From Podarcis vaucheri (lineage: Eukaryota): DNA of 64,000 bases. Under the pieces are notes generated by a model. That model had not been told where the DNA came from. It worked only from the letters and a program-made list of their open reading frames with translations, and did not search any database. This document shows, piece after piece, positions 2,129 through 56,627 of the stretch. Each line of letters opens with the position of its first letter. The first letter of the stretch is position 1. The DNA is taken from assembly GCA_965113315.1 (NCBI GenBank), contig OZ220367.1; one strand, 5' to 3'. The position numbers and the translations under genes were made by a program.

Positions 2129-2354
2129 ATGTTATGTTGGGGAAATGCCTCTTTTGGACAGCTTGGATTGGGGGGCATTGATGAAGAAGTTGTCCTAGAA
2201 CCCAGAAGATGCAACTTTTTCATAAACAAAAAGGTTCGAGATGTAGGCTGTGGACTAAGACACACTGTGTTTGTCTTGGATGATGGGACTGTGTATACAT
2301 GTGGATGTAATGATTTAGGACAATTAGGACATGAAAAATCCAGGAAACGACCAG
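2129..2354 (+). CDS. HERC4: HERC4 coding exon 1
   Basis: Acceptor ttacag at 2074, ATG 2129, MLCWGN...KSRKRP, donor gtaagt. Confidence 0.95.
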
Positions 2355-20300: not shown

Positions 20301-23300
20301 ATTTGTGTTTGATGCACAGGCAAAGACAACACTCTTGCAGACAGATGCAGTCTTACAGATGCAGGTAAAACCGTAATTTAAAAATAAAATACTTTAAAAC
20401 ACTGTAGTTATTCCTGGATTGATATAACTCAGGCCCTGTTTATATTAACTGGCTTGTATCACAGTTGCACAGTTATTGAGAAAAACTGTGTCTTTGGATA
20501 TCAAAGATTCAGGCATTACTGCATCAGTATAATCACAAGCTGGAAATATTACTAGGAATTGTAGATTCTCTTGAGCATCCAGTGTTTATTACTACTGCTG
20601 CTGCCACTAAGGTTTTTACTTGGTTTTCCCCAGATGGCTGTTGACCAGGCTCACAGACAGAATTTCTCATCTATTTTTCTCCCAGTATTTGAATCTGTCA
20701 ATCCATGTCTGATCTTAATTGTGCGCAGAGACAATATTGTGGGGGATACCATGGAAGTCCTAAGAAAAACAAAAAACGTTGACTACAAAAAGCCTCTTAA
20801 GGTATAGCCTATATGCATGCATGTTTACCTTTTTGTGATGCACACCTGGCCTTTAGTTTTCTCTTCTTCTCCACCCCCTACCCCCTGCTTTTCCCATGGC
20901 AAATATTTGTCCTAGAACTGGGTGAAGGGAGAATTCTGAGCAGAAAACAGCTGGCCAAGAAAGGGTTCAGCACTCGCTTCCTCCCATCATTCAAAATCAC
21001 AACTACCTAAGGCTCCTTTTGGTGCATTTTCTTTCTTTTCAATTGTTGGAACTTTAGTATACACACTTGCATATAATTCATAACTTGCCCCTCAACATTC
21101 ATTCATAGAGTTGAGGCTGCTCCAGGTTAATGAAAAATGTACCTGTATAACCTATATACCTGTATAACATATGTCTTTACAAATATACATTTGCCATGTT
21201 CATATTTTATTTATTTATTTATTATTACCCCACCCATCTGGCTGGGTTTCGCCAGCCACTCTGGGTGGCTTCCAGGACATAAATAATAAAAAAAAACATT
21301 TATAAAAACTTAAAACACATTTTACAACTTTAAAGTACAATGTATGAAGTGGCCTTTAGTCAGACTCCTTACTGTAAATGTCATTAGCCAAGTAATAAAT
21401 TGAGCACTTGTGGATAGCTCAGTTGGTCAGAGTCTGGTGCTGATAACGCCAAGGTCGCAGGTACGATTCCCTTACAGGACAGCTGCATATTCCTGCATCG
21501 CAGGAGGTTGTTCTAGATCAGCATTTCCCAACCTTGGGCCTCCAGCTGTTTTTGGACTACAACTCCCATAATCCTCAGCTAGCAAGACCAGTGGTCAGGG
21601 ATGATGGGAATTGTAGTTCGAAAACAGCTGGAGGCCCAAGGTTGGGAAACACTGTTCTAGATGATACTCAGGGTCCCTTCCAACTCTACAATTCTATGAT
21701 TCTATGAGTATGTGTGGTATTTTATTTTTTAAAAATGTAATGTTCTAACTGCATTGCCAATGTTAGGTTATTTTTGTAGGGGAAGAAGCTGTTGATGCAG
21801 GAGGAGTTCGCAAAGAATTTTTCTTGCTTATCATGAGAGAGCTGTTAGATCCCAAGTATGGAATGTTCAGGTACGATGAACAATCGAGGCTCATCTGGTT
21901 CTCAGATAAGGTATGTAATTTGTTGGGTTTTGTGTATTTATAGTGGAAATGGCTATCTTGATTTACTTTCAGCCTATGGTATCTTTGAGAATATTACTAC
22001 TATGATATAATTGCACCAGTGCACACTGCATCCTTTAGACTGTGATAGCATTTGTTATGTTAGCCCTTTGCTCTTGATCCTGAATGTGCTCATTTCTGTC
22101 CCCTTTCCCTGGTGGTCACAGAAGGCCATGAATACAACAGCACTTGATTAAGTCAGTGTGTTTTGTGGCTGCTGCATGGCTGTGTTTTTGTAGAGTCTGT
22201 TGGGGCCAAAATAAAAGTATCATTGCATCTTAAAGTCTTATGGCACAAGTTTTCATGGAGTACAGATCACTTCATTGGGTACATGAAGTGTTCACCTGAG
22301 TTGTTTGGAGGAAGGATTGTAAATCATGAGGTGAGAGAGAAATGAAATGTAGAACATATGATGTCACAATTACATTTTTAACGGTGGCCATTCACAAACC
22401 TCTTGTTGGTGACAAAACAGACACACTGCATGTGTCAAAAATGCTAGGGTAATAAAAAAATCCAAATGTAGTGTGATAAAAAGCATTCCCACAGAAATAT
22501 TCTACACCAGATGTGCCGCAACAAAATACCCTTTTCCTTTGTCATAACTGGCTTCACCAAGGTGTCTCAGAGAAAGGACTTCAAGGATGATCTTAGAACT
22601 TGAGCTGTAGGTTTCTGCAGAACAAAGCAGTCTTCCTAAGCTGATTAAAGTTCTAAAGACAAGAACCAGCACCTTAAACTGTGCCAGAGATGCAGCTACT
22701 GCAGTTTTCTGTTGAGTGAGATATATTGCATTCAGTTGGTCTCTGTTAGTAACCTAGGCATTGTATTCCGTACTAGGGCCTCTCCTTCTTCCGGAGGGGA
22801 GGAGTTGTGAGCAGGAGGCGATTTCCGCGTCACGCAGGGGGCGTTCTGCCCCCTGCCCCATTCACATGGCTGGTGCGCCACGCCCCCGGTCGAGCACCCA
22901 ATGGGGGGCTCTTGGCGGGGGCATGGTTTGCTGCTCAAATGCAGCTGCGCCAGCCATTCTGCCCATTGTGCTCACCTTTTCGCATCGAGTCTAGCTGAAG
23001 TTTCCTAGTTGCTTCAAAGGCAGCACCCAGGACTGCATTAATACAGGATGTTACCAGATCATAGATAACAATCATTAGGACATCTCTCTCTAGAATGCCA
23101 ACCCTCAAAACACTGGTTGCTTGCCACTTGAGTTGTTGTCTCGCTACACTAGAGGGGATTGCAAAATCAAATACAAAGCAATTAAACACCCTTTTCTGTA
23201 ACCCTTGAAAAAATGGCTTGATGAGTTTTTAACCGTATAGATCCCAACCTCAAACATATACATGAGTAATAACTGAGTGTACTAGCTTGCAAAATTATTG

Positions 23301-24862
23301 TGATTCCACTTGAAGTCTAGCAGCAGTTGAATGCAAGCATGGCCTCTAAAGCAATGTGCATGTTTTTGTAAGCTTTTAAAAGTTTAATTTCAGTTTTTTC
23401 ATATTTGCAGACCTTTGAAGACAGTGACTTGTTTCATCTGATTGGTGTTGTCTGTGGGCTAGCAATATATAATTTTACTATTGTAGAGCTTCACTTCCCC
23501 TTGGCTTTATATAAGAAGCTCCTGAACAAGAAACCTTCCCTGGATGACCTCAAAGAGCTAATGCCTGATGTTGGCAGGTGAGCACATTACAACTGAAAGT
23601 ACAGTAAGTAGATTAACATTTCTGTGCATCCTAACTTCTTTGACAGTGCAAAGAAATAATTCAATACAGTGGTGCCCCGCAGGACGAATGCCTCGCAAGA
23701 CGGAAAACCCGCTAGACGAAAGGGTTTTCCGTTTTGGAGGTGCTTCGCAAAACGAATTTCTTATGGGCTTGCTTCGCAAGACGGAAATGTTTTGCGAGTT
23801 CCTGCGGGTTTTTTTTCCTCCCCCCCTTTCCCCAAGCCGCAAAGCCGCTTATCAGCTGATCCTAAGACGCTAAGCCGCTTAACAGCTGATCCGCTAAGCC
23901 GCTTAACAGCTGATCCGCTAAGCCGCTTATCAGCTGATCTGCTAAGCCACTAAGCCGCTTATCAGCTGATCCGCTAAGCCCGCTAATAGCGCTAAGCCAC
24001 TAATGGGCTTGCTTCGCAGGACGAAAAGAACGCAAGATGAAGAGACTCGCAGAACGGATTCTTTTCATCTTGTGAGGCACCACTGTACCTTGTTAAGGAG
24101 ATGAGATACAAGATTTAGAGTGTCTTTATTTCTAGCTGACACACTTGAAACAAATGTAGGTTTTTTAGGATTGAAATCCTTTCAGGGCAAAAAAAACTTG
24201 AACAGATATTGACTTCTCAGTAGCTGCTAGATTTTTTGTTAATCTAAACTGTAAATTTCTGTGGAAGAATATAAAACCATTTCAGTTCTGTAAGTTTCTG
24301 AATAAATTGTGCTGTTACAACTTGTGATGAGAGACATTTTATTCTCAGGAGTATGCAGCAATTATTGGACTACCCAGAAGATGATATAGAGGATACCTTC
24401 TGCCTCAACTTTACAGTAAGTGTGAGATCATCCATTGCCACCTTTTTAATGCCGGTGTAATGAGTAATAATATGTAATCGAGTCTCTCTTTTCCTGTTAA
24501 AATGCTATACTTTGTATAGCATGCTTCACTTTCCTGTATTGAATTATAGATTCTATTCTGCAACAAAAAGTAAAATACACTCTCATGTTCTAAACAGATC
24601 ACTGTTGAAAATTTTGGTACTACGGAAGTTAAGGAGCTAATTCCTAATGGTACTGATATTCCTGTTGTCAAACAAAATAGGTAAGTTTTAGCATGGTAGG
24701 TTGACAGAAGTTTCCCTTTGCTTAATTTTATCAGGGAGAAATGCTTTTTTCGTTTCATGCAGGTTCTTAACTCAGAATTGAACTATAAGGGGTGTGGGTG
24801 TGGTGGGGAGTTATACCCAACTTCTGAGATATTTATTCCAAACCTGTAATCTTGCAAAAGAA

Positions 24863-24920
<58 letters not shown>

Positions 24921-27699
24921 TTGTGGTGATAAATAGGCAAAATATTTTAAGAAACGAGTTTTGCCCTCCTTCTGCTTCTCTTCTTGGTGGTTCCTTACTG
25001 CAGCCACCAAGACATTGGCAGCATTTGAATTATCTTTCCTGGCTTCATAAACCATATCTTAAGAAGTCAGGAATTACAGTGGTACCTCGGGTTAAGAACT
25101 TAATTCGTTCTGGAGGTCCGTTCTTAACCTGAAAATGTTCTTAACCTGAGGTATCACTTTAGCTAATGGGGCCTCCCGCTGCTGCTGCACCGCTGCCACA
25201 CAATTTCTGTTCTCATCCTGAAGCAAAGTTCTTAACCTGAGGTACTATTTCTAGGTTAGCGCAGTCTGTAACCTGAAGCGTCTGTAACTCGAAGCGTCTG
25301 TAACCCGAGGTATCACTGTAGTGTCAAACTTGCCTGTTCCTTTCTCATGCCTCCCCTCTTTGCTTTGTGTGCTGGATTCAGTGTGACATTCATGTTATAG
25401 TTCTTAACTAGGAGCTATCTGAAGATAATTGTTGGCAGTGCTAAATGGTTGCTGTTCATTGCTAGTGGAGTTGTGGTTGAACATTCTCATCTTCTGAAAA
25501 CATGGTGCCTTTTCTTCTCATTTGATCTTTAGGCAAGAGTTTGTGAATGCCTACGTGGACTACATCTTCAATAAATCTGTGGCTCCTCTCTATGACGCAT
25601 TCCATGCAGGCTTTCACAAGGTGTGTGGAGGTAAAGTTCTGCAGCTCTTCCAGCCCAATGAACTGCAAGCAATGGTGATTGGGAATACAAACTATGATTG
25701 GAAAGAACTAGAGAAGGTATGTTACTAGTCTAGACATTAGCAGCTACTGAACACTAAAGAGCCCTGTATAATTAAGCGATTGCCCAAAATAGAGCTTTTC
25801 TGTATTGTGTAGAAAAACACTACATAAAATTCTATAAATACGTTTACACATAGGTATTTTTGTTTGTTCAATATACAACATTTTATTTGTAAATTTGAGG
25901 CAGATATATTGTGATTTTGATTTGTTGTTCTTAGAATACTCAATACAAAGGAGAATATTGGGCAGAGAATCCAACAATTAAAATGTTCTGGGAAGTTTTT
26001 CATGAGTTACCACTGGAGAAGAAGAAACAGTTTTTATGTAAGTATACAAAACTGTGTAAGAAAATAAGAAATCTAAATAGAAACTCTAGAGCAATTGTTA
26101 CCATTGGCTTATTTTTCATGTAACACTAGGTCATAATTTAGCACTATATGCTAAGCAGCAGTGAGCCTCGGGCCTGTGGAGCTTCCTTCAGCATAGCCGG
26201 CTATCGGAATTATCTACCTATGGTTTTAAACAACCTACATCCAAACTTGGAACTGTGGTTTGTTTAGCTGTGGTGTGTTCAGACAAGCCAGGATCAATAT
26301 GTAGTTTATGATCCTGTCTTGTTATCAAGTTATAGTGTAATCTGTCCCCAAATTTGGAAGTAAGAACTCCAGTTTAAGAGCAGCAACAGCAGTTTCTTCT
26401 AATCACTTCAGGGCTGGAGGTTAGGGGAAAATGCAGGCAGCCCCCTTCATGGGAATTTTGTGGGTTGTCAACCACCCAGGGCCCCAGGGAGTTGGCACCT
26501 ATGAATGTGAGTGTAAGGCTCAGTGCTGTTCATGGTTTACATGTCATGCTAAGCCTAAGTGTTAGTGTTGGGTTTGGTTTTTTTGAATGGTTAAAATGCT
26601 AAGTTGACTTTGGATTCTGTCCAAGGGAGAATTTGCATTTTCACTTTTTTAAAAAATGAATATTTTAAACAGAAATAAACAACAACTACTAGGATCAGGT
26701 CTGCAAGTTGCTTATTCACTTATGTTTCAAATACTATCTGTTGGATCCAGACGTTTTTTCGGCTGGTTTCAATGGGAATGAAGCACAACATGCATCATGA
26801 TTTGGCTCACTTGATTGATTTCAGTAATAATAATAATAATAATAATTTTTTATTTATACCCCGCCCTCCCCAGCCAAGGCCGGGCTCAGAGTAGGACCTA
26901 AGTTAACTTAAGTCTGGATTCTGCCCTGAGTTTTGAATGTGTGAGCACCCTAACATGCATACAGGCACATATATGAATAGATTAACTGCAGCTGTTTCTG
27001 GTGAAACACATCATACCAGTTGAAAGCACCCATGCAGCTATTCTGCTTGATTTGATGATTCATTAAAGGTTGAAAACCTTACTTTAGGTGCAAGCACACC
27101 TGTTTCCAAGCAAATAATTATTTATTTAGCCAAGAGAAACTGTTAACTTAATTAAATCACTTCACACCACACTTGTTTTTTAGGGTTGGACTCAGGAGTG
27201 TTATATGGATTTTCTGTTTTTAGTTATATTCCCCCCCCCCCCAAAGAACCTCTGGGTGAAGCAATGAACAAATATAATAAATAAGTTCTCTAAACTATAA
27301 AATTTGTTTAGAATAACTTTAAGCAAAAACAGTGAACTATAAACAATTTCATATGGCTATAACTGCCTTACATTTTCAGAATTTTAGATTTGGGTTATAT
27401 CAGTCTAAAAAGTAAAATGAAAATTATAGCACAGCACTAAATTTTTGGCTTTTGTACCCAGCTTCTTACTTATTTATATTTTCTTGGTAGTATTTTTGAC
27501 AGGCAGTGATCGTATTCCTATTCTTGGGATGAAGAGCCTTAGTCTTGTCATTCAGCCGACTGGAGGTGGTGATGAGTATCTCCCCGTGTCTCATACATGT
27601 TTTAATCTTCTTGATCTTCCAAAATATACAGATAAAGAAATACTCAGATCTAAGCTGATCCAGGCTATTGATCACAATGAAGGTTTCAATTTAGTATAA
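2129..27699 (+). CDS. HERC4: HERC4 E3 ubiquitin ligase (RCC1-like domain + HECT), whole coding span, 24 coding exons, 1060 aa
   Basis: Starts [16 protein letters not shown], ends ...[17 protein letters not shown]...[13 protein letters not shown]. All exons bounded by AG/GT, phases close, total 3183 nt. Catalytic HECT Cys in SHTCFN. Promoter and first non-coding exon(s) not identified in the window. Confidence 0.97.
3414..3573 (+). CDS. HERC4: HERC4 coding exon 2
   Basis: [21 protein letters not shown]...TRVPR, AG/GT. Confidence 0.95.
4061..4137 (+). CDS. HERC4: HERC4 coding exon 3
   Basis: [29 protein letters not shown]. Confidence 0.95.
4629..4850 (+). CDS. HERC4: HERC4 coding exon 4
   Basis: [17 protein letters not shown]...GLNDEN, AG/GT. 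Confidence 0.95.
5346..5437 (+). CDS. HERC4: HERC4 coding exon 5
   Basis: [35 protein letters not shown]. Confidence 0.95.
6767..6897 (+). CDS. HERC4: HERC4 coding exon 6
   Basis: [18 protein letters not shown]...TQIACGR, AG/GT. Confidence 0.95.
7036..7395 (+). mobile_element. Sauria SINE, full length, young
   Basis: GGTGGCGCTGTGGGTTAA A-box, GTTCGAATCC B-box, (ACCTTT)n tail, 15-bp TSD ttataaagataagac at 7021-7035 and 7396-7410, CpGs intact. Confidence 0.92.
7683..7843 (+). CDS. HERC4: HERC4 coding exon 7
   Basis: [25 protein letters not shown]..., AG/GT. Confidence 0.95.
8878..8954 (+). CDS. HERC4: HERC4 coding exon 8
   Basis: [30 protein letters not shown]. Confidence 0.93.
9652..9787. 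mobile_element. Decayed hAT-type MITE
   Basis: ggatgggaa ... aactcccatcatccctgaccattggc ... ttccccatccctg; related to 21519 and 63904 copies. Confidence 0.6.
10260..10393 (+). CDS. HERC4: HERC4 coding exon 9
   Basis: [23 protein letters not shown]...PAEIAN, AG/GT. Confidence 0.9.
10741..11357. mobile_element. Non-autonomous Tc1/mariner-pogo-type MITE (family A) with internal hairpin repeats
   Basis: TA|CAGTGGTGCCTGGCAAGACGAA ... TTCGTCTTGCGAGGCACCACTG|TA. Confidence 0.88.
11700..12680 (-). mobile_element. Degenerate non-LTR retrotransposon ORF2 3' fragment (RTE-X-like)
   Basis: ORF 11831-12367 has [11 protein letters not shown]...[12 protein letters not shown]...[10 protein letters not shown], a decayed C-terminal CCHC-type LINE motif; boundaries approximate. 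Confidence 0.55.
12791..12850 (+). CDS. HERC4: HERC4 coding exon 10
   Basis: [24 protein letters not shown]. Confidence 0.94.
12997..13108 (+). CDS. HERC4: HERC4 coding exon 11
   Basis: [41 protein letters not shown]. Confidence 0.94.
14583..14772 (+). CDS. HERC4: HERC4 coding exon 12
   Basis: [24 protein letters not shown]...APLKVL, AG/GT. Confidence 0.95.
15197..15436. mobile_element. TA-TSD MITE family C
   Basis: TA|CAGTGGTACCTCTAGTTG ... CAACACGAGGTATGATTG|TA. Confidence 0.8.
15881..16053 (+). CDS. HERC4: HERC4 coding exon 13
   Basis: [20 protein letters not shown]...LEILHR, AG/GT. Confidence 0.95.
17217..17336 (+). CDS. HERC4: HERC4 coding exon 14
   Basis: [18 protein letters not shown]...QQQAYGM, AG/GT. 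Confidence 0.95.
19240..19491 (-). mobile_element. Sauria SINE with internal deletion
   Basis: AAAGGTAAAGGG tail end, 5' end acagcgccacccgcgtccc, 15-bp TSD tgtacataggacata (19225-19239, 19492-19506); B-box region missing. Confidence 0.88.
19964..19987 (+). CDS. HERC4: HERC4 24-nt micro-exon (probably alternatively spliced)
   Basis: ctcttttggtag|GATATCAGCCATGGATTAAATGAG|gtaaga = DISHGLNE, phase 0/0. Confidence 0.85.
20266..20364 (+). CDS. HERC4: HERC4 coding exon 16
   Basis: [37 protein letters not shown]. Confidence 0.95.
20634..20801 (+). CDS. HERC4: HERC4 coding exon 17
   Basis: [11 protein letters not shown]...DYKKPLK, AG/GT. Confidence 0.95.
21412..21707 (+). mobile_element. tRNA-Ile-headed SINE with CR1-type (ATTCTATG)n tail, interrupted by a MITE
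   Basis: TAGCTCAGTTGGTCAGAG...TGCTGATAACGCCAAGGTCGCAGGT head; ggtcccttccaactctacaattctatgattctatga tail. Confidence 0.8.
21519..21654. mobile_element. hAT-type MITE nested in the SINE
   Basis: TIR cagcatttcccaaccttgggcctccagctgttt / aaacagctggaggcccaaggttgggaaacactg; perfect 8-bp TSD ttctagat. Confidence 0.9.
21767..21910 (+). CDS. HERC4: HERC4 coding exon 18
   Basis: [19 protein letters not shown]...IWFSDK (HECT N-lobe), AG/GT. Confidence 0.95.
23411..23577 (+). CDS. HERC4: HERC4 coding exon 19
   Basis: [21 protein letters not shown]...[12 protein letters not shown]. Confidence 0.95.
23667..24085. mobile_element. MITE family A with internal 24-bp tandem repeat
   Basis: TA|CAGTGGTGCCCCGCAGGACGAA ... 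GAGGCACCACTG|TA; repeats of ccgctaagccgcttaacagctgat. Confidence 0.88.
24349..24415 (+). CDS. HERC4: HERC4 coding exon 20
   Basis: [26 protein letters not shown]. Confidence 0.95.
24598..24680 (+). CDS. HERC4: HERC4 coding exon 21
   Basis: [32 protein letters not shown]. Confidence 0.95.
24865..24917. repeat. (TTTC)n microsatellite
   Basis: About 13 tandem units read directly. Confidence 0.95.
25077..25318. mobile_element. TA-TSD MITE family B
   Basis: TA|CAGTGGTACCTCGGGTTA ... TAACCCGAGGTATCACTG|TA. Confidence 0.88.
25533..25716 (+). CDS. HERC4: HERC4 coding exon 22
   Basis: [16 protein letters not shown]...[12 protein letters not shown]. Confidence 0.95.
25935..26037 (+). CDS. HERC4: HERC4 coding exon 23
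   Basis: [38 protein letters not shown]. Confidence 0.95.
26825..26845. repeat. (TAA)n microsatellite next to a retroelement tail fragment
   Basis: taataataataataataataa followed by tttatttataccccgccctccc. Confidence 0.8.
27491..27699 (+). CDS. HERC4: HERC4 last coding exon
   Basis: [15 protein letters not shown]...[13 protein letters not shown]...EGFNLV-TAA. Confidence 0.96.
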
Positions 27700-29549: not shown

Positions 29550-29916
29550 TTATAATGGAAGTGGGGAAAGCAGTAACCCAAGTTACTCGTTACAATGAAT
29601 GGGTTCTTCCTTGCATATACCTTGTTAAGTAAGCTGTCTTTCCTTCCTACTAAGTTCCCAACATATAACTACTTCCCTTGCAGATGTTTGTTCCATAACC
29701 ATGTGTTACATTGTAATAATGCTCAGCCTAGACATCTGTTACTTTGACCAAGCGTGCCATGTGAAGCTAGGTTCTTCTACCATTCTGTTGGTTGCAGTTT
29801 GGATCATCTCCATTTTTGTAGTTCACAAATAACTTGTTGAAGTAGTTCCTGTGAAAATGATGAGCTTTTTGAAGGAATATTTTGTGTGTCAGCAGGAGTT
29901 TTAAGAATGAAGGCAG

Positions 29917-29919
<3 letters not shown>

Positions 29920-29988
<69 letters not shown>
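29920..29988. repeat. (TG)n-GCGCGC-(AC)n palindromic microsatellite
   Basis: Read directly; perfect inverted repeat 29920-29983. Confidence 0.95.
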
Positions 29989-29992
<4 letters not shown>

Positions 29993-30316
29993 TTATTACA
30001 CTTGAGGTGGTAGGAGATTATGAGCAATGCGGGTGCATGCATTGCTATCAAGGTCCTAATTGTACCTCATCCACCAGCATATAGGCACTTGTATGTTTCC
30101 CCTAATGGGGTAAATAGCAGCTATAGGACGGTGGGAGTGATTTTAAAAATAGAAAAAACAGCACAGCTGCAGCCATAATCCAAACCAGACCTACTTTGGC
30201 TGCTTTGATCCCAAAAAAGGGATACTGTTCAGAGCTCTTGTATGGTATTTCTGTCTCAGCTTTTAGATGCAGGTGCAATAAAGTAACTAAGGTTGATGCA
30301 GCTAAAGGCAGGCAGA

Positions 30317-30322
30317 TTTATT
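30317..30322 (-). terminator. Poly(A) signal of COX5B-like gene
   Basis: tttatt on + = AATAAA on -, about 52 nt after the TGA. Confidence 0.75.
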
Positions 30323-30374
30323 TAAGTCTACAATGAAAGAAAGAAAGAAAAAAACCTTTTCTTGGTATCAGTTC

Positions 30375-30487
30375 TCAGTGGGGGAGTTCATAATGAGTTA
30401 GCTTGTAGTAAGACCCACACTGAGGGCAACGGTGGCTGTCTCCTTTGTGTACCCAGAACCAAATAATAGTGGAGTTATCTTCCTCAC
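30375..30487 (-). CDS. COX5B-like exon 4
   Basis: ttttttctttctttctgcag|(C)[39 protein letters not shown]. Confidence 0.95.
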
Positions 30488-33400
30488 CTGCAGAAAGAAA
30501 GAAAAAATTCCAGTATCTGTTAATTAAGAACCCACATTTTAGAAAGCTTGAAGGACTTTAGAGAAGGACCAGTTACATTTGACAACAGTTTTGGTTCCCT
30601 AGAATAGTGGAACAGCAGCCTTTGAAGCTGGTCTATTTTTGAAGTTGGTTATGGCATCTTTCCTACCAGATCAGTGGGAAGTAGTTTTGCATGTTGCTGC
30701 ATCTTTTGTGTAGTTATCATTGTAGGACATAACTACACGTGGACTCTGGGAAAGAGACTCCCAAATGCATGAATGTGGGGGAGAATTGGCAGGAAATGTT
30801 TAACTTGTCACCCTGCTGACTGTTAGTGTCAGACAAGAAAACAAGCCCAGAGAGTGAAAACAACCTGGGAAAGAGCCAATAGCTCCTTGGTGTTTCAAAG
30901 CAAGAATCATAGAAAATGCCATGTTTGTATCTTAATATAGTATGCATCTTCTACCAAAGACTCAGGCTGTGCATATTTTTCATGCCGCTTCATTTGTAGC
31001 AGGGTCAATAAGTATGCCTTTACAGTATTTTTAAAATTTCTTAAAGCACTCACACCCAACTCAGCGAGAAACCACTGTTAAAAATCAACACGATTACCAC
31101 AGAAATTTTGCTGTAGGTAATTTATAAGATATGGATGGAACACTTACACCCACTCTTACCCTCCTCAGCTCCCCTTGGGTTCAGTGGATTCTTCCCCTTG
31201 TGCATGCACACAGGCAGCCCAGGACAGGGAATGGGAAGTCTGAGCATGCTGCCTCTATAATTATCCCACTTTGAGTGCATGCATGCACTGAGGGATGTGT
31301 TGAAGGGGAAAGGATCTACTGTTTGAATCAAAAGACGATTGCTTCACCATGGTGGGACGGGATTGCACCTGAAATGTCTGGTGCTTAATAGGTTTTACAA
31401 GACTATGCAATATGAGAATCAGGAAGACAGTATGTACTGAAGTCAAATGAATTCTGATACCTACAGATACAACCCACTAGTCTCTTGTCCCCAATTGATG
31501 GAACAATATGAGGCTCTTCTCTGGTTCCTGGATATTTCTTGGGCTTCAAGACGTTGTATGGATCCTTTATAAAGAAAAAATGTGTTAGTTCCTTTACTGA
31601 ATGACCAAGGGTTGATTTTTAAAGAACTAGAATACAGTGGAAGAACAAAAAAGTTATAAATCTTGGGTGACTGAAGTAAGAGTTTAAGGCTGTATTCCAC
31701 TCCAACCTTGGTTCATCCGCATGAATTTCATTGCTTTTAAATTCAGCTTGATATGTAAATTAAGTGATGCTGAGAAAAATCTACAGGGCCCGTAAAGACT
31801 TGAGACCTCTAAGTCACAGTGCATGATGAGACCACAGCCAATGGCGTAGTCAACAAAAGCAATGGGAGATGTGTTGGGTTGGTGGTTAAATTTCTTTTTA
31901 AAATCTTCCACTGATAGTGATAGTTATTAGTCAAGAGTGTGAAACCAAACAAAATCATATTTCAGTGAAACTCTTCAATTGCTTTAAACTTACTTCCCCT
32001 CTCTTCAAGGCTTGCATACTTTTCAGTTCAAGCCCAGTAGCTTGCTCTTCATCTGTAGGGATACCTGAAAAGAACAATGGAAACCCCCAGATTTGATTGC
32101 CTATCTGACACTATGCACTGATATGCAAACTTAAACCCATTTAAATCAACTGTTAAGTGTAGGGTCAACTTGGGCTTAAGTACGCAAATCTCAGGCCTTC
32201 ATAGCAAATGCAGCTAGCTCTTTCTTTTGTAATTGCCATCTCTCTTTATGCACTGATTGAGATTCTCTCTATGTGTCTTTCTACATTCTGCTTTGTTGGC
32301 ATTGATGATAACAACTACAGTCATACCTCTTCTTGTGAATGCTTCATGTTGCATTTTTTCAGGTTAAGAACACAGCAAACCCAGAAGTTTCGCCACACAC
32401 GCAGATGCATTCTGCACAGTTCGCATATGCGCAGAAGCGCTGCTCTGGTTGCGGACTTTTCGGGGCGCGAATGGTACCCCGGAACGGATTGTGTCCACAA
32501 CCAGAGGTACCACTGTACCTTTGGGCAGAGGCATAACTAGGCCCCCTTGTGTCCTTAGCAAGGAGACACATCAGTCTGCTGCCTCCCCTGTCCCTTGCGC
32601 TTTTGGCAAGGAGCTGTATTGGGAGAGACCATGGACCAGAAACTCAAAACGGTTGCTTTTCATTGGCTTTTGCACTCAGCCAGTGACTTCCTCCACAGAC
32701 ATTGGGGTTGAGTCTGCTCTGCCCTGCCTCCCCACCATCTCCATTAGTCCATCTTCCTGACTTCTGCCTCTTTTCCTTCTGCCTCCATTCCACTCTTGCC
32801 CTCTCCCTGTGTTCTGTTCCTCTGAGTCCTGCTGGGTGCTCTACTCACACTTCTAATAGCGCTGCCAGCCACCTGGGGAGGGGGGCCCTCAGGGCTGCAG
32901 CAATCTGATTTCTCCATCCTGGCACCCAGAGGAGCCTGCATATCTCACCCAGCCATCCAGAGCAGTGGAGGAATGGCCTGAGGTGTACATGGATGATCAG
33001 GCTCCCAGCCACTCTGAGCCAACCTATCCAGTCACTAGGCATGCCTCCGCCTCTGGGTAACTAACAGGCCATGTGTGAGGGGATTCTATATGAGCAAAAT
33101 CCCTGCCATCAGTGCCTCTTCCTCTTAATAACTGCTGTAGGAAAAATTCTAGCACCAAACTGGAGTCTGCTGCTGTCATAGTTTCCAACTCTTCTTTTAC
33201 ACACCTATTTGCATGCTTAGATATATCTATCCTTAACTGCTGAGCAGGTACTATGCTTCCCAGGCCACTGGCTGAAAAAAAAGTCTTTAAAAACCCTGTA
33301 ACTCACACATTAAATCAAGGACAGCCAACTTGATGCCCTCCAGATACTTTGGACTATAATTCCCAACAGCCCCAGGCGGCATTGCCAATGATAAGGGATT

Positions 33401-35365
33401 ATGGTAGTTGTAGTTGAAAACAACTGGAAGGCACCATGTTGTCTATTCCTGTTTTACAGAATCCCCACTTGAGGGCCCCTGCATTATGGTTTGACGAGGT
33501 GTACTGAGATATTAATGAAAAAGAGTGTGAAAAGAGAAATCCATGCACATTCCCACCTACTGGGTATACCACTTCTCTTGAAGGTGCCACCAAACTCAGC
33601 TGTCCTGTGTATTTCCCAGTCTTTTCTGTTTTCGCTTCAGGCAAATTGAAAATTTGTTTTAATTTCCAAAATCTGAGCTTCATGGGCCCTTGGAGGATGT
33701 AGCAATTTAATATTAAATGTTGAACCAACTAAATGAACCCCAGGAAGAAGTGGAGAATGAAACAATTCCGATAAAATTATGCACTTCTAAATCATACTGG
33801 TTTGAAGGTGATATTTTAGGATGTACTACATATTCTTTACTACCACCCCTGCTAAGTACACTGATCAGATGGGATATAGCAGGGTCTAATTAGGAACCTG
33901 GGGGTCATGGCAGAGAGCTCAATGAAATTATCAGTACGTTGCAGTGAATAAGACAGCTTCAGATGATAAAGAAATGGACTGAAATGAAAACTGAGAGTAC
34001 CACAATGTCCTTACACAATACATTATAGCTTAGTCGGTAGAGAACGCAATTCTTAATCTCAGGGTTGTTGGTTTGAGCCCCACCTTGGGCAAAGGTTTCC
34101 TGCATTGCAGCAGGTTGGACTACGTTGTCCCTTCAAACTCTATAATTCTGATTCTGTGATCTATGGTGTTGCCACATTTAGAATGTTGTGTACAGCTTTA
34201 GCTGTAGATCGAAAAGGATGTTGTAGAGGTAGAAACAGTGCAGAAAAGGGAGCATATTTCCATCACTAGTTACATCAGAGAAAGTATTCTATTGAATCCC
34301 AGTTACTGGGCTATTGCCTTCAGGCTCTGTTCAGGGACATGATGTTTGCAATTTGGTAAGTGGGGTGGTGGGACACGGGTGGTGCTGTGGGTTAAACCAC
34401 AGAGCGTAGGACTTGCCAACCAGAAGGTTGAAAATTCGAATCCCTGCGACGGGGTGAGCTCTCGTTGCTCAGTCCCTGCTCCTGCCAACCTAGCAGTTTG
34501 AAAGCACGAAGTGCAAGTAGATAAATAGGTACCGCTCTGGTGGGAAGGTAAATGGCATTTCCATGCACTGCTCTGGTTCGCCAGAAGCGGCTTAGTCATG
34601 CTGGCCACATGACCCGGAAGCTGTACGCCGGCTCCCTCGGCCAGTAAAGCGAGATGAGCGCCGCAACCCCAGAACTGTGGTGAGAAGGGGCCATTTCGTA
34701 ACCTTTGGCTTCCACCCACAGGTCAAACGAGAGTTACAACAGAGCCTCAGCAGAAAAGAAACAAACAACCCTTTTGTTTTGGGCAATTGTCAAGTTTAGA
34801 TAATAATTATTAATCATTAGCCCGCTGGTCGCCAATGGTGACTCCCTCCGCCCTCCCCCCAAATCTCACGTGCAGCTCTGCAAACAGACTATTGCCTGCC
34901 TCACTTCAAAGGCCATTTATGGGGGGCTGTTCCACGTGTCTTCCCCACAGGGCACGTGATTCCCTTCAAGAAGAGGGAAGCAAAGGGGCCTGGTGCCAGG
35001 GGCGGCTCTTGCCTGCCATACGCCCGGGGTAGGGGGGTGGGCTTTGGTTTCTTGGCGGAAAAGCAGGCAGGAGCGCCCAGCACGACCTCATAACCCCGAG
35101 GAGGCGCCTCCTGGACGGGGCGGGGGGTGCCGCGCTTTGGTTTGAGTTGAGGTCACCTTGCCGAGGTCTGCGAGCGCCAGGCAAAAGCAGCCCCTCGCTC
35201 CCCCGGAGCGCGCTCTCGCAAGCCCAGCAGAACGCGCCCAGCCCCGCCGCCGCCGCCCCTCGTCGGCCTGTACGCACCCCCGGCGCTCATGGCTCGGATG
35301 GAGGCGGGCGCCGTGGCCCGCACAGCTCGCGGGAAGAGCCGGAGGAGCAGCAGCCTGGTCGCCAT
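30375..35365 (-). CDS. Cytochrome c oxidase subunit 5B family paralog (COX5B-like / cox5b2-type), 4 exons, 123 aa
   Basis: Exons 35365-35278, 32064-31994, 31564-31465, 30487-30375 (88+71+100+113=372 nt) splice via GT-AG to [126 protein letters not shown]5B hallmarks: [27 protein letters not shown], CxxCG. Strong Kozak context ccgccATGG. Confidence 0.95.
31465..31564 (-). CDS. COX5B-like exon 3
   Basis: ttttttctttataaag|[33 protein letters not shown](C)|gtaggt. Confidence 0.95.
31994..32064 (-). CDS. COX5B-like exon 2
   Basis: gttcttttcag|[24 protein letters not shown]|gtaagt. Confidence 0.95.
32318..32515. mobile_element. TA-TSD MITE family C, inverted, in COX5B-like intron 1
   Basis: TA|CAGTCATACCTC ... 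CAACCAGAGGTACCACTG|TA; homologous to the 15197 copy. Confidence 0.8.
34026..34165 (+). mobile_element. tRNA-Lys(CTT)-headed SINE with CR1-type tail
   Basis: TAGCTTAGTCGGTAGAG...TCTTAATCTCAGGGTT head, ttcctgcattgcag body, decayed attctrtg tail. Confidence 0.78.
34370..34673 (+). mobile_element. Sauria SINE, 3'-truncated
   Basis: Clearly homologous to the 7036 copy from the 5' end to ...gcaaccccaga; no ACCTTT tail. Confidence 0.88.
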
Positions 35366-35600
35366 GGCGGAGATGCGGGGATCCGACGGCGGAGCAAGGT
35401 CAGCCAGCCTTGCAGCTGTCGCCGGCGCTCACGGGAGGCGGCCACTCCCACCAGAGGGAGGGGCAGCGGGCCACCGCCGGCAACACCAGCCCGAAGCGGG
35501 GCTGAGCGCCCCCAGGCTCAGGGCTGTGGGTCATTCATGGGCCTCCCCCCCCCCAAGTTTTCGCCAGCTTGGTGCTCCCCCCATCGTGAAGAGCACGACT
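34820..35600 (-). promoter_or_regulatory. CpG island / promoter and intron-1 regulatory region of the COX5B-like gene
   Basis: Abrupt GC- and CpG-rich stretch; GC box 35117-35126; CAAGGTCA 35395-35402; TGAGGTCACCTTG 35148-35160; CACGTG at 34867, 34933, 34953. Confidence 0.8.
35278..35365 (-). CDS. COX5B-like exon 1 (mitochondrial presequence)
   Basis: [29 protein letters not shown], Arg-rich with no acidic residues; donor G|gtgcgt; lies in CpG island. Confidence 0.9.
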
Positions 35601-39883: not shown

Positions 39884-40194
39884 TTATAGTTTGTCTGTCG
39901 AATGGTCAAATCCTACAGCTTCGTTTACCGACACAGACTCAGATTCCTGAAGCTCAATTCCATCTTCTCCATATCCATTCTCCTCTTCTCTGTCAGGAGT
40001 ATCTTCTTCTATACCGTTATAGAACTCTTCAATTTCACTCTCGTCTTCTATGTCTAAGCTTGGACTATGACAGGACCCACTATCGCTGCTACTTCCACAA
40101 GAGCTGGAGGATATGACATCATCTTCAGAGTCCGAGTATACCTCAGCACCATGGAAAATATAGCGATTTGGTGGTAAAAACAAGTATTGGGTAC
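39884..40194 (-). CDS. SIRT1: SIRT1 exon 9 (coding part)
   Basis: [26 protein letters not shown]...STDKL-TAA. Confidence 0.95.
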
Positions 40195-43100
40195 CTGAAA
40201 CATGTTTGATTAGCAAGAATAGTTATTTCAGCATTAATAATCCCAAGAAGTCCTAAATGTGATACATTAATGCTTATGGGTTGTCATTATTTTAAGCACT
40301 ACTGTTTCTAGGTAAGGAAATAGGTATACATAAAATTTATTACACTTTAATTTCACATGTTGTGGACTATGGAATCCCTTTTTAAATGCTCACTACACGC
40401 TGCTATGTGCTTAACTGGATTCAGCAACATATGAAGGCATTCACTATTCAGCACCCCCCTCCAAGTTTCTCACTGTACACATAATGTACACATTCCAATA
40501 TTGTCTCAAAGAAAGAGCTCCCTTCCACTCTCATTTACTGGTGGCCACAGTCAAAGATCTTGAGGGAAGGGAAGCAGTTATGAATGTGTAACTAATTTCT
40601 GTGGTTTAATTATGAAGTCTACAATCCACTTCTTTCCCTTCACTTTTCTCAAAGATACATCTTAATAAGCAATGACGTCAGACTGTGCCAATGACTGTTA
40701 TCAAAGAAATACAGCAATCGCTTCAGAGCTTACTGCCTAAAGGCTTATTAAAAGCAAGTTGACTGAAATACCATTTTTGATGGGCTGTGCAATTGAAAGC
40801 TACACTAAAAGGCCTGTACAACTCTTGGTATTGCTGCAACCTGTTCGTGCTGCAAGTCTCTCCCATTCCAGGCATCTAAATGAGATTTTGTTTTACTCAG
40901 AAAATCATATTTTTATCTCCAGTATACTATTAGACATTCTGAACTTGAGGAAAGCATACTGTTCTATATTAATACAATTTGTAATGCAAAAAACATATCC
41001 ATGCATCACATCTGGCAGACATGTACCAGAAGCTTGGTGCTGGTGTGCATACTACAACTTCTACAGGCAAGCTGCCACAAATACCAAGTCAATTTCTATA
41101 TGGCACTGCAAAAAAAAGAAGAAATTGGATGGTGTGGAGAAAACTCACATAGTCCATATAAGGAATGGTTGCATAGAAATAGCTTGGCACTGAAAACTAC
41201 TGCCATGTGCACCAATCCTTGTAAACTGAGGGGAAAACAAGTTCCCCAATTCTTTTCAGGTTTTTCTTGCAGCAATTTAGTTGATTTGGATGCTTAAAAG
41301 CAGTGGTAATAACAGAAGTCTGCATCTTAAAATTTGGGTTGGTTTAGATAATCCTTCAAACCTTGTTTTAGATTTTCAGGAGTGAGACTTTGCCTCACAT
41401 GTTCTCCCCGCCCCCGCCCCCTGCACTCAAGATCCCTTTTCTGCTTAAAGCAAAACTTAATTTTGTCATGATGTCCTAATCAGGCAAACAATGCTGCTCA
41501 AATGTGTAGAAGTAATTCCGAATCCTGCAAATCATGTTTGAGGATTACCTGAACTGACCCTTCCCCCTCTTGCTGCTTCTGGATTTTGTGAAAAGACGAG
41601 GGAGTGGGAAAGAAGAGAGAATAGGGGGAAGAGAAACAAAAGATGTGCATATTTCCTGTGGGGAGATGCAGGGGGGAAATATCCACAGGGATATGTAAAT
41701 TCCCCTCCCCTTCACACGACACACAGAAGTGCCATTTCCATTGCCACTTTTTAGATTGTGTGGGATCGCCCATAATGTACTTGGCAGCACAATCTTATAC
41801 ACGTCTTTTCAGAAGTAAGCCACATTGAACTCAATAATCCTTACCAGCCTGGAGTTGGTGTGAGGGTTAAGTGATGTCAGTGGGGCCAAGCTGGGATCCA
41901 GGGTATCCCTGGTTGGCTCAACCCCTCCCTGGCACATCCTGTTTGGGGGCTTTCCCCCAGTACAGCTGTTTTGGGCTGGGTGGAGGGATAGTGCTGCCCC
42001 TGTCACCCTACCTGTGGCAGATCAGAGGTCTGGACTGCAGCCTACTTGCTGAAACCAGTGGTAACCTATGTGATGCCAGTTATTGTGGACTACATCTCCC
42101 ATCATCCTTGACCAAGTCATGCCAAATGAAGGTGATGGGAGTTGACTTAAAGGCACTGCACAACTTCATCAAGTGTTTATCAGTGTTTCACGTCCGATCG
42201 CCTTTCTAGATTTGTTGCATTTTAGAACAAAACAAAGATTACTACATTGTTTTATTACAAATATCCTAATTTGGATTTTGCCCACAGCCATGGGTAGGAC
42301 CACCTTCAGGGACAAAGTGGGATATAATTATAAATAGATATCTCATTTCATATGGGTCTGACAATAGCTTTGTAAGGCAGAAAAGCAAAGAGATAAAACA
42401 AGTATATTAGAAATGCAGACATTCGTTTTGAAGGCATACAAAGTAAATTCAGTTCATATTGCCTACATGTAGTTTGAAAGCTTGCAAACATTTGAAGTAA
42501 TCAGCTGGTTCAGTCAGAGGAATTCTTTCATTTGTTCAAGATTTCCTATTGTACTGCACCAACATAAATCTAAGTATTTCTTATTGAAGTGGATGTACAT
42601 GTTTTCATTTCTCTGGTTGCAAGATCAGATCATTTTTACAAAATGCTCTTCACTATTGACTGAATTCCTTCAAAACAAAATTGCTGTGTTTAATACTTTG
42701 AAAGTATTGTTTAATTTGAATGTAGGTGTTTGCAAATTATTTAAGCACTTACCATCAAGCCGCTTGCTAATCTGCTCTTTTGCACATCTATTAACCCAAC
42801 ATTTTCTTAGTGTTTCAACAGATGTTTTTTCACTTCTCTCTTTGTTTTCCTCTTGGTTAGATCCATTTTCCTTCACATGTTCTGGGTTTTCTAGATGGTC
42901 AGAAAGACTTTCAACATTCTCTAAAGAGTTTTGAACTTCTTGAAATTTTTCTTCTACACAGTTCTCTTTAGACTCCAAGGAAGCATCAGAATTTCCTGCT
43001 TTATATTCAGAAGATTGCTCTGAACGTACCACCTGAGAATGTTGTGGTGCAATTCTTTCAGGTGAACTAGAATATTCAGAAATGTTTAGAGGAGTAGGTG

Positions 43101-46100
43101 GTAATTCAGCTGAATGTATTTCAAATTCTTTGTGAGGTCTGGGAGGCTTCTCTGTTATTTCTGAAAGTTTGACTGAATTGCTACAAAGTTTTGTATATTC
43201 ACCACCTAATCTATGACATAATTCATTGATAATGACATCACAGTCACCAAGAAGCTCCACGTCGAAGTGTAGATGAGGCAATGGTTCCCTATTAATTAGA
43301 ATCTGAGGCACTTCATGTGGGATAGAACCTACATGTTTACGAAAAATAAAACAAAATGTATGTTACAGAAATATAATGTCAACTGTTATTAACAAATGTG
43401 ACAACTAGTTTTAGGAACTACTTGTAAATGCACTAAAAAGTGGCCTAGAATTCTGCTTCTGCAATATTACTTAATAGTATGTAAGATAAATACACTCCTT
43501 TCTCTTATATTCCTCCCAGATCTAAAAAACTCTCTAAATTCAATAATTACAGCACTGTACAGCATGACAGTTGTATGGAAGCTCCGTATATATTTATTCT
43601 GAAACAGAGACTCCCCTCCATATGCCTAAGAGATGAGCAATCAACACTTACTTGGAATTAATGCAACTGGTCTTACTTTAAGTGAAGACCCGATAACAAT
43701 GAGAAGATCAACCTCATCTTTGTCATACTTCATGGCCCTATGAAACTGCTCAGGTAGATTTTCACCAAAGAACACTATTTCCGGCTTCATGATGGCAAGT
43801 GGTTCATCAGGTGAACATCTGGGACATCTAGGAACAACCTGCATACAGAAGGTTGCATTTTTAGTTTTATAGAAGCTAAATTCAATTAGCAAATCACTGG
43901 GTCAAAACATTAGCTGCAACAGATTTATTAAGAAGTTCAGATTGCTATAAAAAATGACTGATGTTATAATCCACAGCTTTTCTAAATAATATTCCAAGTG
44001 TAACAAAACTGATGATGACATGCAAGTATGAATTGAAGACTAATACTTTAACCAGTTTTTTCCCCATGAAGCACCTGAACAAATTATTTTTAAACTCGTT
44101 AAAACGTTAATTACAATTTTCCAGAGAACTATTCTATGAATAATTTACAAATATTTCCTCTCATCTGTCCCAACAAAGAGAAGCACAGCACATGTTGCAT
44201 ATTTATCAGCTTTTGTGAAGGATTGCCTCACATATGTATTCTCTCTCTATTGTACAGAAACAAATTATGATGCATACAATGAAGATGCATCAATTAAACA
44301 TTAGAGTCATGTGTTTCCATAGCCAGCATGGAAACCCAGGTTACTAGCCTCTTAGCAAGCTTATAATAATTTTTGCAGGGTAGCAGTTTCCAGGGATGCC
44401 TTAGTTCCTCCTTTTCTAGTCTCACAAAGCCTTTCCTCCAAATTCTCAGTCTACTGTCACTATGCATCCTTGATTCAACCACCTTGTCTCCAGACCCCCA
44501 TCCTTTAGTTTCCCTCCTCCTAATCTTCCCCAAAGAGCTTACAAATTATATCCCTGCTTCTTTCCCTAGAGCTTACAAATTATATCCCTGCAACTTTCCC
44601 TTCCCAAATGGAAGGTGGACTGAAATCATTCTGACACTGCTAGCTCTAATCTTAGGCAGCTGAGCTAAAATACTTAGGGAAATAAAAGTGTCCTCCAGTG
44701 AATGACAGGTCAAGCGTCACATCTGAACTAACCTACAAGAAATATTCTACTTTGAAGAATCTTTCCAAGCTGCTTTGAGCTCAACTGAAGAAATGGTGAA
44801 ATATAAATATAATGTTATGAGATTTGGGATTGGGAAGATTCCAGACCCCTATAAGCCCTGGATCCAGCAAGTGTTAAAAGCTAATCAAACCAAGCTAGCT
44901 TTCTGAACCCCTAGGTAAGCATCTGGAACCTCTGGAATTTTGCACTGCTTGGAGATTGGAGTGGCATGCAACAATGATAATAAATAAGAACTGCACTTGT
45001 CTGGAGAACTACAACTGTTTCTATGTAAACTGAATTCTTGAACTGCTGCAGTTCACATTTCTAGATATAAGGATAACATTTTATCTGATAGTTATTAACA
45101 CTCATACTTTTTGTTCATTAACAGTGCATTCCTAATCATGTTTGCACAGAAGATCAGTTAAGCTTAGTGAGCCTTACTCCTTAAGCCTGTTTATGAATGC
45201 AGCCTTAAATGTACCTGATAATATTTATGGTTTTATTCCTACCTGATTGAAAATGTCTCCTCGAACAACTTCACAATCAACTTTGTATTTACAGATGAGG
45301 CAAGAAGCTGTTGCAAAGGAACCTGAAACACATGCACACACCAGAAAGCAAATAAGGATGTATGCAGTTGTCTGGATTCATATATTAACCGACCTAGTTT
45401 ATTCTAGTCATACTGATCTGAGCATAGGAACACATACAAACATATATGACTTAATTTGCACGTTCACATTTAGCTGATAAAATTCACTGGATTATATCCA
45501 GTTAGTCATACTTAGAGTAGGCCCACTGTAAGCAAACCCTTGGATTCCAATGGGTTCACTCCAAGTATTAATTAGTTGAATACTACCCATTGTTGTTGTA
45601 TTTCATTTGTTCATCCTGAAAATCTATGGGGGCACTGCAATAGAATTCACTGTCAGGGAGCGGAAGCACAATCCTCTTCAGATGTATTCATAAATGTACA
45701 GTTCAAAACATTTATCCTATTCTATATTCTCCAGGAACTAACCAAGTGAGAGATATGCAAAATGCTGAAAGATTCCACATATCCCTTAAAATTAACATGA
45801 GATCTAGATAGAATTTAAGATTGACTAACCATGACATTGGATTATCCTTTGAATTCCTGCCACTTGTTCCAGTGTATCTATGTTCTGAGTATAATTGCGA
45901 AGCAGTTTTTTTTCTTTATCCATCAAAGCTATAAATTTATGACAGAGAGATGGTTGAAACTGTCCAGGATATATTTCCTGTAGAATTTTTTAAAAAGCGA
46001 AAAATAAATTTTGCTAATATCACATTTCAGTTTTTGTTTTAAAGATCAGCCACCATACATTAGCTATTGCTTGCTAGAACCAACATTTTCTTAAACTGAT

Positions 46101-56549: not shown

Positions 56550-56627
56550 ATGGATGCAATTTTGAACTGCAGACTGGAGGACATGGAAGATTTTTACAGC
56601 TTGCTAGGCTGTGATGAATTGTCTACA
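56550..56627 (+). CDS. DNAJC12: DNAJC12 coding exon 1
   Basis: MDAILNCRLEDMEDFYSLLGCDELST|gtaaga. Confidence 0.94.

Follow-up and report, generated by a model that had tools for sequence, protein, structure and literature searches.

A probable COX5B2 gene, transcribed and intact, between HERC4 and SIRT1 in a Podarcis lizard

Results

Structure of a COX5B-like gene

We analysed a stretch of 64,000 nucleotides (nt) from Podarcis vaucheri (contig OZ220367.1 of assembly GCA_965113315.1), here called the window, in which four genes follow one another in the order HERC4(+), COX5B-like(-), SIRT1(-) and DNAJC12(+). The subject of this study is the second of these, a COX5B-like gene whose product belongs to the family of subunit 5B of complex IV (cytochrome c oxidase), and which stands in addition to the canonical COX5B gene of these lizards. 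It consists of four short minus-strand exons, running from 35443 to 30297 and separated by three GT-AG introns of phases 1, 0 and 1. When the minus strand was read and every exon translated individually, the coding sequence (CDS) added up to 88+71+100+113 = 372 nt, an intact frame that encodes a precursor of 123 amino acids (aa). The features of the gene are as follows.

35278..35443, minus strand: exon 1, with a 5' untranslated region (UTR) that extends to at least 35443 (RNA contig X6)
35365..35278, minus strand: exon 1 CDS, beginning with ATG at 35365-35363 and comprising 29 codons and one further base; donor GTGCGT
31994..32064, minus strand: exon 2, 71 nt, acceptor ...TTTTCAG, donor GTAAGT, Pfam COX5B positions 30-46
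31465..31564, minus strand: exon 3, 100 nt, acceptor ...ATAAAG, donor GTAGGT
30297..30487, minus strand: exon 4, acceptor ...CTGCAG, 3' UTR to about 30297, as judged from RNA contig ends at 30297-30303
30487..30375, minus strand: exon 4 CDS, completes C-I-C and carries C-P-Q-C, TGA at 30377-30375
30317..30322, minus strand: AATAAA polyadenylation signal, about 20 nt ahead of the RNA contig ends
35100..35600, no strand: CpG-island promoter, GC 0.73, CpG observed/expected 0.79 vs 0.32 window-wide

Exon 1 encodes a putative presequence of about 26 aa and the putative mature N-terminus, and its last base opens a Gly codon that is split by the intron (G/GT); exon 3 closes with the first Cys of C-I-C and the first base of the split codon for the second (T/GT). 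All acceptors are pyrimidine-rich AGs. The third donor, GTAGGT, lies two bases upstream of a more obvious AG/GT, and it is only GTAGGT that keeps the frame. The start codon stands in the context CCGCCATGG.

An initial annotation, made from the letters of the DNA, had proposed this gene, and its description of the sequence was right in all details that we checked. The four exons with GT-AG introns in phases 1, 0 and 1 and the 123-aa product were borne out by the exon translations and by RNA junctions (below), the CpG island and the AATAAA were both found at the gene, and the zinc ligands that it had pointed out, C-I-C and C-P-Q-C, are present and align with the Cys pairs of the bovine protein. 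The location between HERC4 and SIRT1 agreed with the open reading frame (ORF) translations on either side.

Transcription and splicing

Two raw RNA runs and two sets of RNA contigs were aligned to positions 30200-35500. The junctions 30487/31465, 31564/31994 and 32064/35278 matched the model boundaries exactly (CT..AC on the plus strand), with 28, 17 and 26 reads, respectively, in the bulk RNA run X23 and 17, 20 and 11 reads in the single-cell run X21. The initial annotation had named a lack of spliced reads, together with a dN/dS near 1, as the sign of a pseudogene; all three junctions were found in both runs. The orientation of the reads was consistent with minus-strand RNA in a standard stranded library. 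A single 529-nt contig (X6) spans all of the exons (35443-35276, 32062-31993, 31563-31463 and 30485-30297), and its ends mark how far the 5' UTR reaches at the least and where the poly(A) region lies. Run X1 (contigs only) showed nothing of the exon 1-2 junction except 27 loose letters at 35276; read by eye, these are the beginning of exon 2 in reverse complement, with the two differences at 32045 and 32054.

The COX5B-like transcript was present in every RNA set examined. In nine RNA-like runs (X6-X14, from four studies and under three organism labels), 0.11-0.13 of the sampled words were found, which is about the exonic share of the stretch (529/5301), and the share was higher in X1-X5. The depth of raw reads in X23 and X21 was moderate (exon bins about 6-17x, with about 2 billion letters read per run), and the k-mer depth of the gene in RNA contigs was 100-675. 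The window and the RNA reads differed at three coding positions (32045, 32054 and 35329), all of them synonymous when the codons were read by eye, and compared with the RNA runs of 'organism A' the window DNA differed at few bases, which were synonymous or in a UTR.

Two families of repeats were noted in intron 1. The first (34271-34801) is dispersed, probably a short interspersed element, and reached a k-mer RNA depth of up to about 126,000 with many loose ends; peptides similar to it occur in the ORFs at 7152-7355 and 19312-19500. The spike in depth at this position inside the gene arises from the repeat and is unrelated to expression of COX5B. The second family has members at 32324-32677 (intron 1) and 15162-15446 (an intron of HERC4) with similar ORF peptides; it is transcribed in X6 at a depth of 25-60 and forms part of spurious contig 'joints'.

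Identity and predicted features of the protein

Exons 2, 3 and 4 each matched the Pfam family COX5B (PF01215) on their own. Against COX5B chains of the PDB, exon 3 gave E 1.4e-10 and was colinear with residues 60-92 of the mammalian precursor, and exon 4 gave E 3.9e-15 and was colinear with residues 94-129. Scanning a representative library with the peptide of exon 4, and then searching for homologs, led to a filed protein (P0053) that is identical over all 123 residues to the four exon translations joined through the two split codons. It scored 91.7 bits against PF01215 (cut-off 31), and is thus a member of the family, and aligned with bovine COX5B at E 1.5e-46, with its residues 27-123 on mature residues 2-98. 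The zinc-site Cys residues are in register with those of the bovine protein (GCICEEDN in both, and RCPQCG vs RCPSCG).

Five of the first 26 residues are Arg and none is acidic, residue 27 falls on mature bovine residue 2, and Arg occupies position -3 of the putative cleavage site in both the lizard COX5B-like protein and bovine COX5B. From the bovine alignment, a presequence of about 26 residues would be removed after ...IRAM, which would leave a mature protein of 97 aa that can be aligned end to end with mature bovine COX5B, the four zinc Cys included. On the best-supported reading, and by homology, the protein would be imported and cleaved, and would then stand in for the canonical subunit at the matrix face of complex IV.

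Public annotation and coexistence with canonical COX5B

P0053 is filed as XP_028585251.1 (P. muralis), CAI5774530.1 (P. lilfordi) and XP_053244380.1, and the proteins filed for Lacerta agilis and Zootoca vivipara are only a few residues different from it. Public annotation calls XP_028585251.1 'COX5B, mitochondrial-like', a generic name with no paralog designation. Judged by its identical protein, the window gene is the same gene; it is already known, and is not a new discovery. The initial annotation had described it as hidden, which is true of the ORF track and not of public annotation, and it had added the caveat, which proved well founded, that an anonymous COX5B-like locus might already exist there.

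A distinct canonical COX5B of 132 aa (P0210) is annotated as XP_028596451.1 in P. muralis. It has further accessions in P. lilfordi and, going by the accession series, probably P. raffonei, and canonical COX5B is also found in Lacerta and Zootoca. Both types occur within one species in Lacerta, Zootoca, Elgaria, Varanus, Hemicordylus, Lerista and the turtle Carettochelys, and in each of these seven genera the two are annotated on sequences of different length. Several amphibians also hold both types. Over their mature parts, the two lizard paralogs have 71-78% of residues in common (71% against the lizard's own canonical copy).

The canonical type itself (P0210, P0117 and P0211) is present in more than one copy in Podarcis, with P0210 on five contigs. 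In P. lilfordi the canonical type has three accessions, and on a 127-Mb sequence of P. raffonei there is an 88-aa 'like' model. These extra copies may be duplicates or retrocopies of the canonical gene. A retrocopy or pseudogene was also considered for the window gene, and was ruled out by its three GT-AG introns, its intact 123-codon frame, its spliced RNA and its conservation. The initial annotation had likewise taken it not to be a retrocopy, and the three introns, the intact frame and the presence of all junctions in RNA agree.

Phylogenetic position

Three maximum-likelihood trees were calculated, two of them from 81 and 79 proteins (about 128 columns) and the third from the mature domain alone (93 columns). 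All three contained a strongly supported canonical clade (support 99/98, 99/96 and 98/89), made up of sharks and rays, bichir, sturgeon, bowfin, teleosts, coelacanth, amphibians and every amniote 'COX5B', the canonical copy of Podarcis among them. The window protein lay outside this clade, and its exclusion persisted when the presequence was removed. It belonged instead to a squamate '-like' clade (100/97, 100/98 and 99/90), which was joined by the turtle '-like' proteins and amphibian cox5b.2 in the second and third trees (93/84 and 88/84); the first tree did not resolve this grouping. The comparison with COX5B and cox5b2 for which the initial annotation had called places the window protein, in the second and third trees, with turtle '-like' proteins and amphibian cox5b.2. 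Teleost and shark proteins named 'subunit 5B2' fell on the window protein's side of the branch that bears the canonical clade, as an unresolved grade near the lamprey root.

One column near the C-terminus is diagnostic. Pro is found there in 78% of canonical proteins vs 5% of the 5B2-type, and His in 81% of the 5B2-type vs 0% of canonical proteins; both lamprey and the window protein have His.

Taxonomic distribution

Among squamates, 5B2-type proteins were found in lacertids, Elgaria, Varanus, Hemicordylus, Salvator, Lerista, Phrynosoma and Anolis. Other carriers are several turtles, many frogs and caecilians, lungfish, bichir, bowfin, sturgeon, teleosts, catshark and chimaera. No bird, crocodilian or mammal 5B2-type protein was among the best 120 matches of the window protein to annotated proteins, searched through a word index, and the bird, crocodilian, mammal and tuatara proteins that were put in the trees were all inside the canonical clade. 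No gecko or snake 5B2-type protein was seen among the annotated proteins reached through the same index. The 5B2-type would have been kept by squamates, turtles, amphibians and fishes, and apparently lost in mammals, birds and crocodilians. The initial annotation had suggested retention in squamates and loss in mammals; the squamate carriers uphold the first part, and for the second, there were no mammals among the best 120 matches of the window protein to annotated proteins.

In Anolis carolinensis, the ortholog is represented only by truncated or mis-started models (P0001, P0002 and P0049) with unrelated N-termini, which suggests that this annotation lacks the first exons or fails to recognise them.

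Genomic neighbourhood

The genes on either side of the COX5B-like gene were identified by eye from recognisable peptides in the ORF translations (HERC4 and SIRT1), and the DNAJC12 exons by their match to part of a turbot protein.

2129..27699, plus strand: HERC4, downstream neighbour, tail-to-tail, RCC1 repeats from 2129 and HECT C-terminus to 27699
39884..51897, minus strand: SIRT1, upstream neighbour, first exon 50995-51897 and last coding exon ending at about 39884
56550..61594, plus strand: DNAJC12 exons, exon 1 from 56550 and a later exon at 61391-61594, matching part of turbot P0099

The turbot protein (P0099, Scophthalmus maximus KAF0027245.1) consists of a DNAJC12 J-domain fused to a C-terminal 5B2-type COX5B. 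Its first 100 residues matched PDB 2CTQ with E 5e-40, compared to about 1e-11 for other J-domains. In this model two neighbouring genes have almost certainly been merged by mistake, which implies that a gene of the cox5b2 type adjoins dnajc12 in a teleost, in keeping with a conserved block; in the window, DNAJC12 is two genes away from the COX5B-like gene.

Human COX5B is at 2q11.2 beside ACTR1B, and human SIRT1 and HERC4 are at 10q21.3. The regions 2q11 and 10q21-24 have several paralog pairs in common, such as ACTR1B/ACTR1A and ARID5A/ARID5B. These pairs would fit an origin of the two COX5B types in the early vertebrate genome duplications.

The motif CACGTG occurs 12 times in the window, vs 3.5 expected, and none of 100 shuffles reached 12. 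Of these, three are packed into a 92-bp segment of intron 1 (34867-34958). A further three (52038, 52106 and 52174), just upstream of the first exon of SIRT1 and within the CpG island between SIRT1 and DNAJC12, are spaced by exactly 68 bp; Tandem Repeats Finder found no tandem repeat behind this trio. A long (GT/CA)n microsatellite (29880-30010) separates the 3' end of HERC4 from that of the COX5B-like gene.

Comparison with known COX5B genes and isoform pairs

One named counterpart is Xenopus cox5b.2 (NP_001037898.1; X. laevis cox5b.2.L, NP_001085056.1), officially 'cytochrome c oxidase subunit Vb, gene 2'. Like the window gene, it belongs to the tetrapod '-like' clade of the second and third trees, has the diagnostic His and the context ...RAMS-GG at the putative cleavage site, and is accompanied by a canonical cox5b. 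It differs in being only about 65% identical and in its zinc motif, which is CPSC compared to CPQC in the lizard. The cox5b2 proteins of teleosts and sharks (Cynoglossus XP_008325812.1, Carassius, Denticeps and Scyliorhinus 'subunit 5B2') share with the window protein the non-canonical side of the tree and the diagnostic His, but are 58-63% identical to it and form no supported clade with the tetrapod genes. Little and co-workers (2010) reportedly counted an extra COX5b copy as specific to teleosts.

Canonical COX5B (bovine chain F of 1OCC / 2Y69; Podarcis XP_028596451.1) has the Pfam family, the length and the zinc Cys pattern in common with the window protein, and the mature proteins are colinear. 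In contrast, it belongs to the other clade and to another locus, with Pro rather than His at the diagnostic column and CPSC rather than CPQC. Squamate canonical COX5B also lacks the terminal His of the window protein.

The likeness to COX4I1/COX4I2 of mammals and to Cox5a/Cox5b of yeast is one of concept only, that of two interchangeable nuclear isoforms of a complex IV subunit. The subunit is a different one (yeast Cox5a/b are homologs of COX4), and regulation by oxygen is established for those pairs; a comparable switch of 5B isoforms in reptiles, which the initial annotation had suggested, would be hypothetical. For subunit 5B, a protein labelled COX5B2 rose 7.7-fold in the liver of anoxic crucian carp, while COX5B1 fell in the heart (PMC10007964). 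As a pointer for lizards, this analogy is a lead and not evidence. A search of the available literature for cox5b2, cox5b.2 and COX5B paralogs in reptiles or amphibians gave matches in fish and plants only, and nothing on a tetrapod COX5B2.

Discussion

The data above make it probable that the window gene is a functional, broadly transcribed second isoform gene for subunit 5B of complex IV, and the lizard member of the COX5B2 group (cox5b.2, cox5b2 or 'COX5B, mitochondrial-like' in present annotations). How old is the duplication that gave rise to it? As cartilaginous fishes, ray-finned fishes and tetrapods are found on both sides of the tree, the simplest reading is that it took place before the radiation of jawed vertebrates. 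On tree topology, taxon distribution and the one diagnostic residue, we favour a duplication that would predate tetrapods, and probably jawed vertebrates.

Several observations weigh against this interpretation. The 5B2-type proteins form an unresolved grade and not a supported clade; the sequences are compatible with their monophyly (p 0.35). In approximately unbiased (AU) tests on the 128 columns, trees that held all squamate (p 0.09), all amniote (p 0.175) or all tetrapod (p 0.107) sequences in one clade, as for a duplication inside that group, were not rejected, and the sequences alone are therefore no proof of an ancient date. By BLAST, the window protein is 70-73% identical to canonical lizard COX5B over 80-83% of its length and 62-65% identical to turtle and frog 5B2-type proteins over the full length, no higher than to the canonical type. 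The apparent absence from mammals, birds and crocodilians comes from annotated proteins searched by a word index, and is no proof of loss. Linkage across species is a clue from the single fused turbot model, and import, cleavage and incorporation into complex IV would follow from homology.

These results leave some room for a real second COX5B of more recent origin, duplicated at the DNA level within tetrapods, amniotes or squamates, with its grouping among 5B2-type proteins an artefact of a short, slowly evolving protein. We consider this unlikely. The AU tests do not reject it, and in its favour the raw identities are as high to canonical lizard COX5B as to the frog and turtle 5B2-type. However, the canonical clade, which holds sharks, ray-finned fishes and coelacanth, excludes the window gene in all three trees, and the constrained trees were 13-26 log-likelihood units worse. 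Amphibians, turtles and squamates each have sets of two genes, the '-like' genes group across these classes in the second and third trees, the His/Pro column disagrees with a young duplication, and so does the link of a 5B2-type gene to DNAJC12 in turbot. Thus, the ancient second isoform put forward in the initial annotation is favoured by topology, while a younger one is not rejected by the AU tests.

Still less likely is that the gene is a transcribed relic without function, or that its protein no longer enters complex IV. Such a reading would be in keeping with the moderate depth of the raw reads. Against it, at least 10 squamates, 3 turtles and many amphibians have an intact ORF, and the mean pairwise identity among six squamates is as high for the COX5B-like paralog (0.84) as for canonical COX5B (0.83), with both the zinc ligands and the predicted presequence kept. 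The clean splicing, the k-mer depth in RNA contigs and the synonymous nature of all the coding differences also argue against a relic. Finally, it is scarcely credible that the window gene is the sole COX5B, relocated from the neighbourhood of ACTR1B to the SIRT1-HERC4 gap: a single relocated ortholog, which the initial annotation had allowed for should no second COX5B exist, had nothing in its favour and was rejected because a distinct canonical COX5B is annotated alongside it in Podarcis (P. muralis, P. lilfordi and probably P. raffonei) and in Lacerta and Zootoca, where the canonical copy is on a sequence of different length from the '-like' gene.

If COX5B2 is a second isoform gene as we propose, it could be an ohnolog from the era of the two early rounds of vertebrate genome duplication, kept by ectotherms (fishes, amphibians, turtles and lizards) as an isoform that complex IV uses under particular conditions or in particular tissues. 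This further step is speculative, and we regard it as doubtful. Were it true, the isoform might serve roles such as the response to hypoxia or to temperature change, its loss in mammals and archosaurs would mark a simpler regulation of complex IV, and the CACGTG cluster in intron 1 could be part of the switch.

As the gene is already in public annotation, the value of this analysis lies in its naming, its orthology and the experimental question that it raises, rather than in discovery. Mammals have one gene, and subunit 5B is usually treated as having a single isoform, so studies of respiration in reptiles and amphibians may overlook the second. The species that hold the 5B2-type would be clean taxa in which to ask whether the isoforms of subunit 5B exchange with oxygen, temperature or tissue, and the lizard gene described here points to an unstudied pair of isoforms in ectothermic tetrapods.

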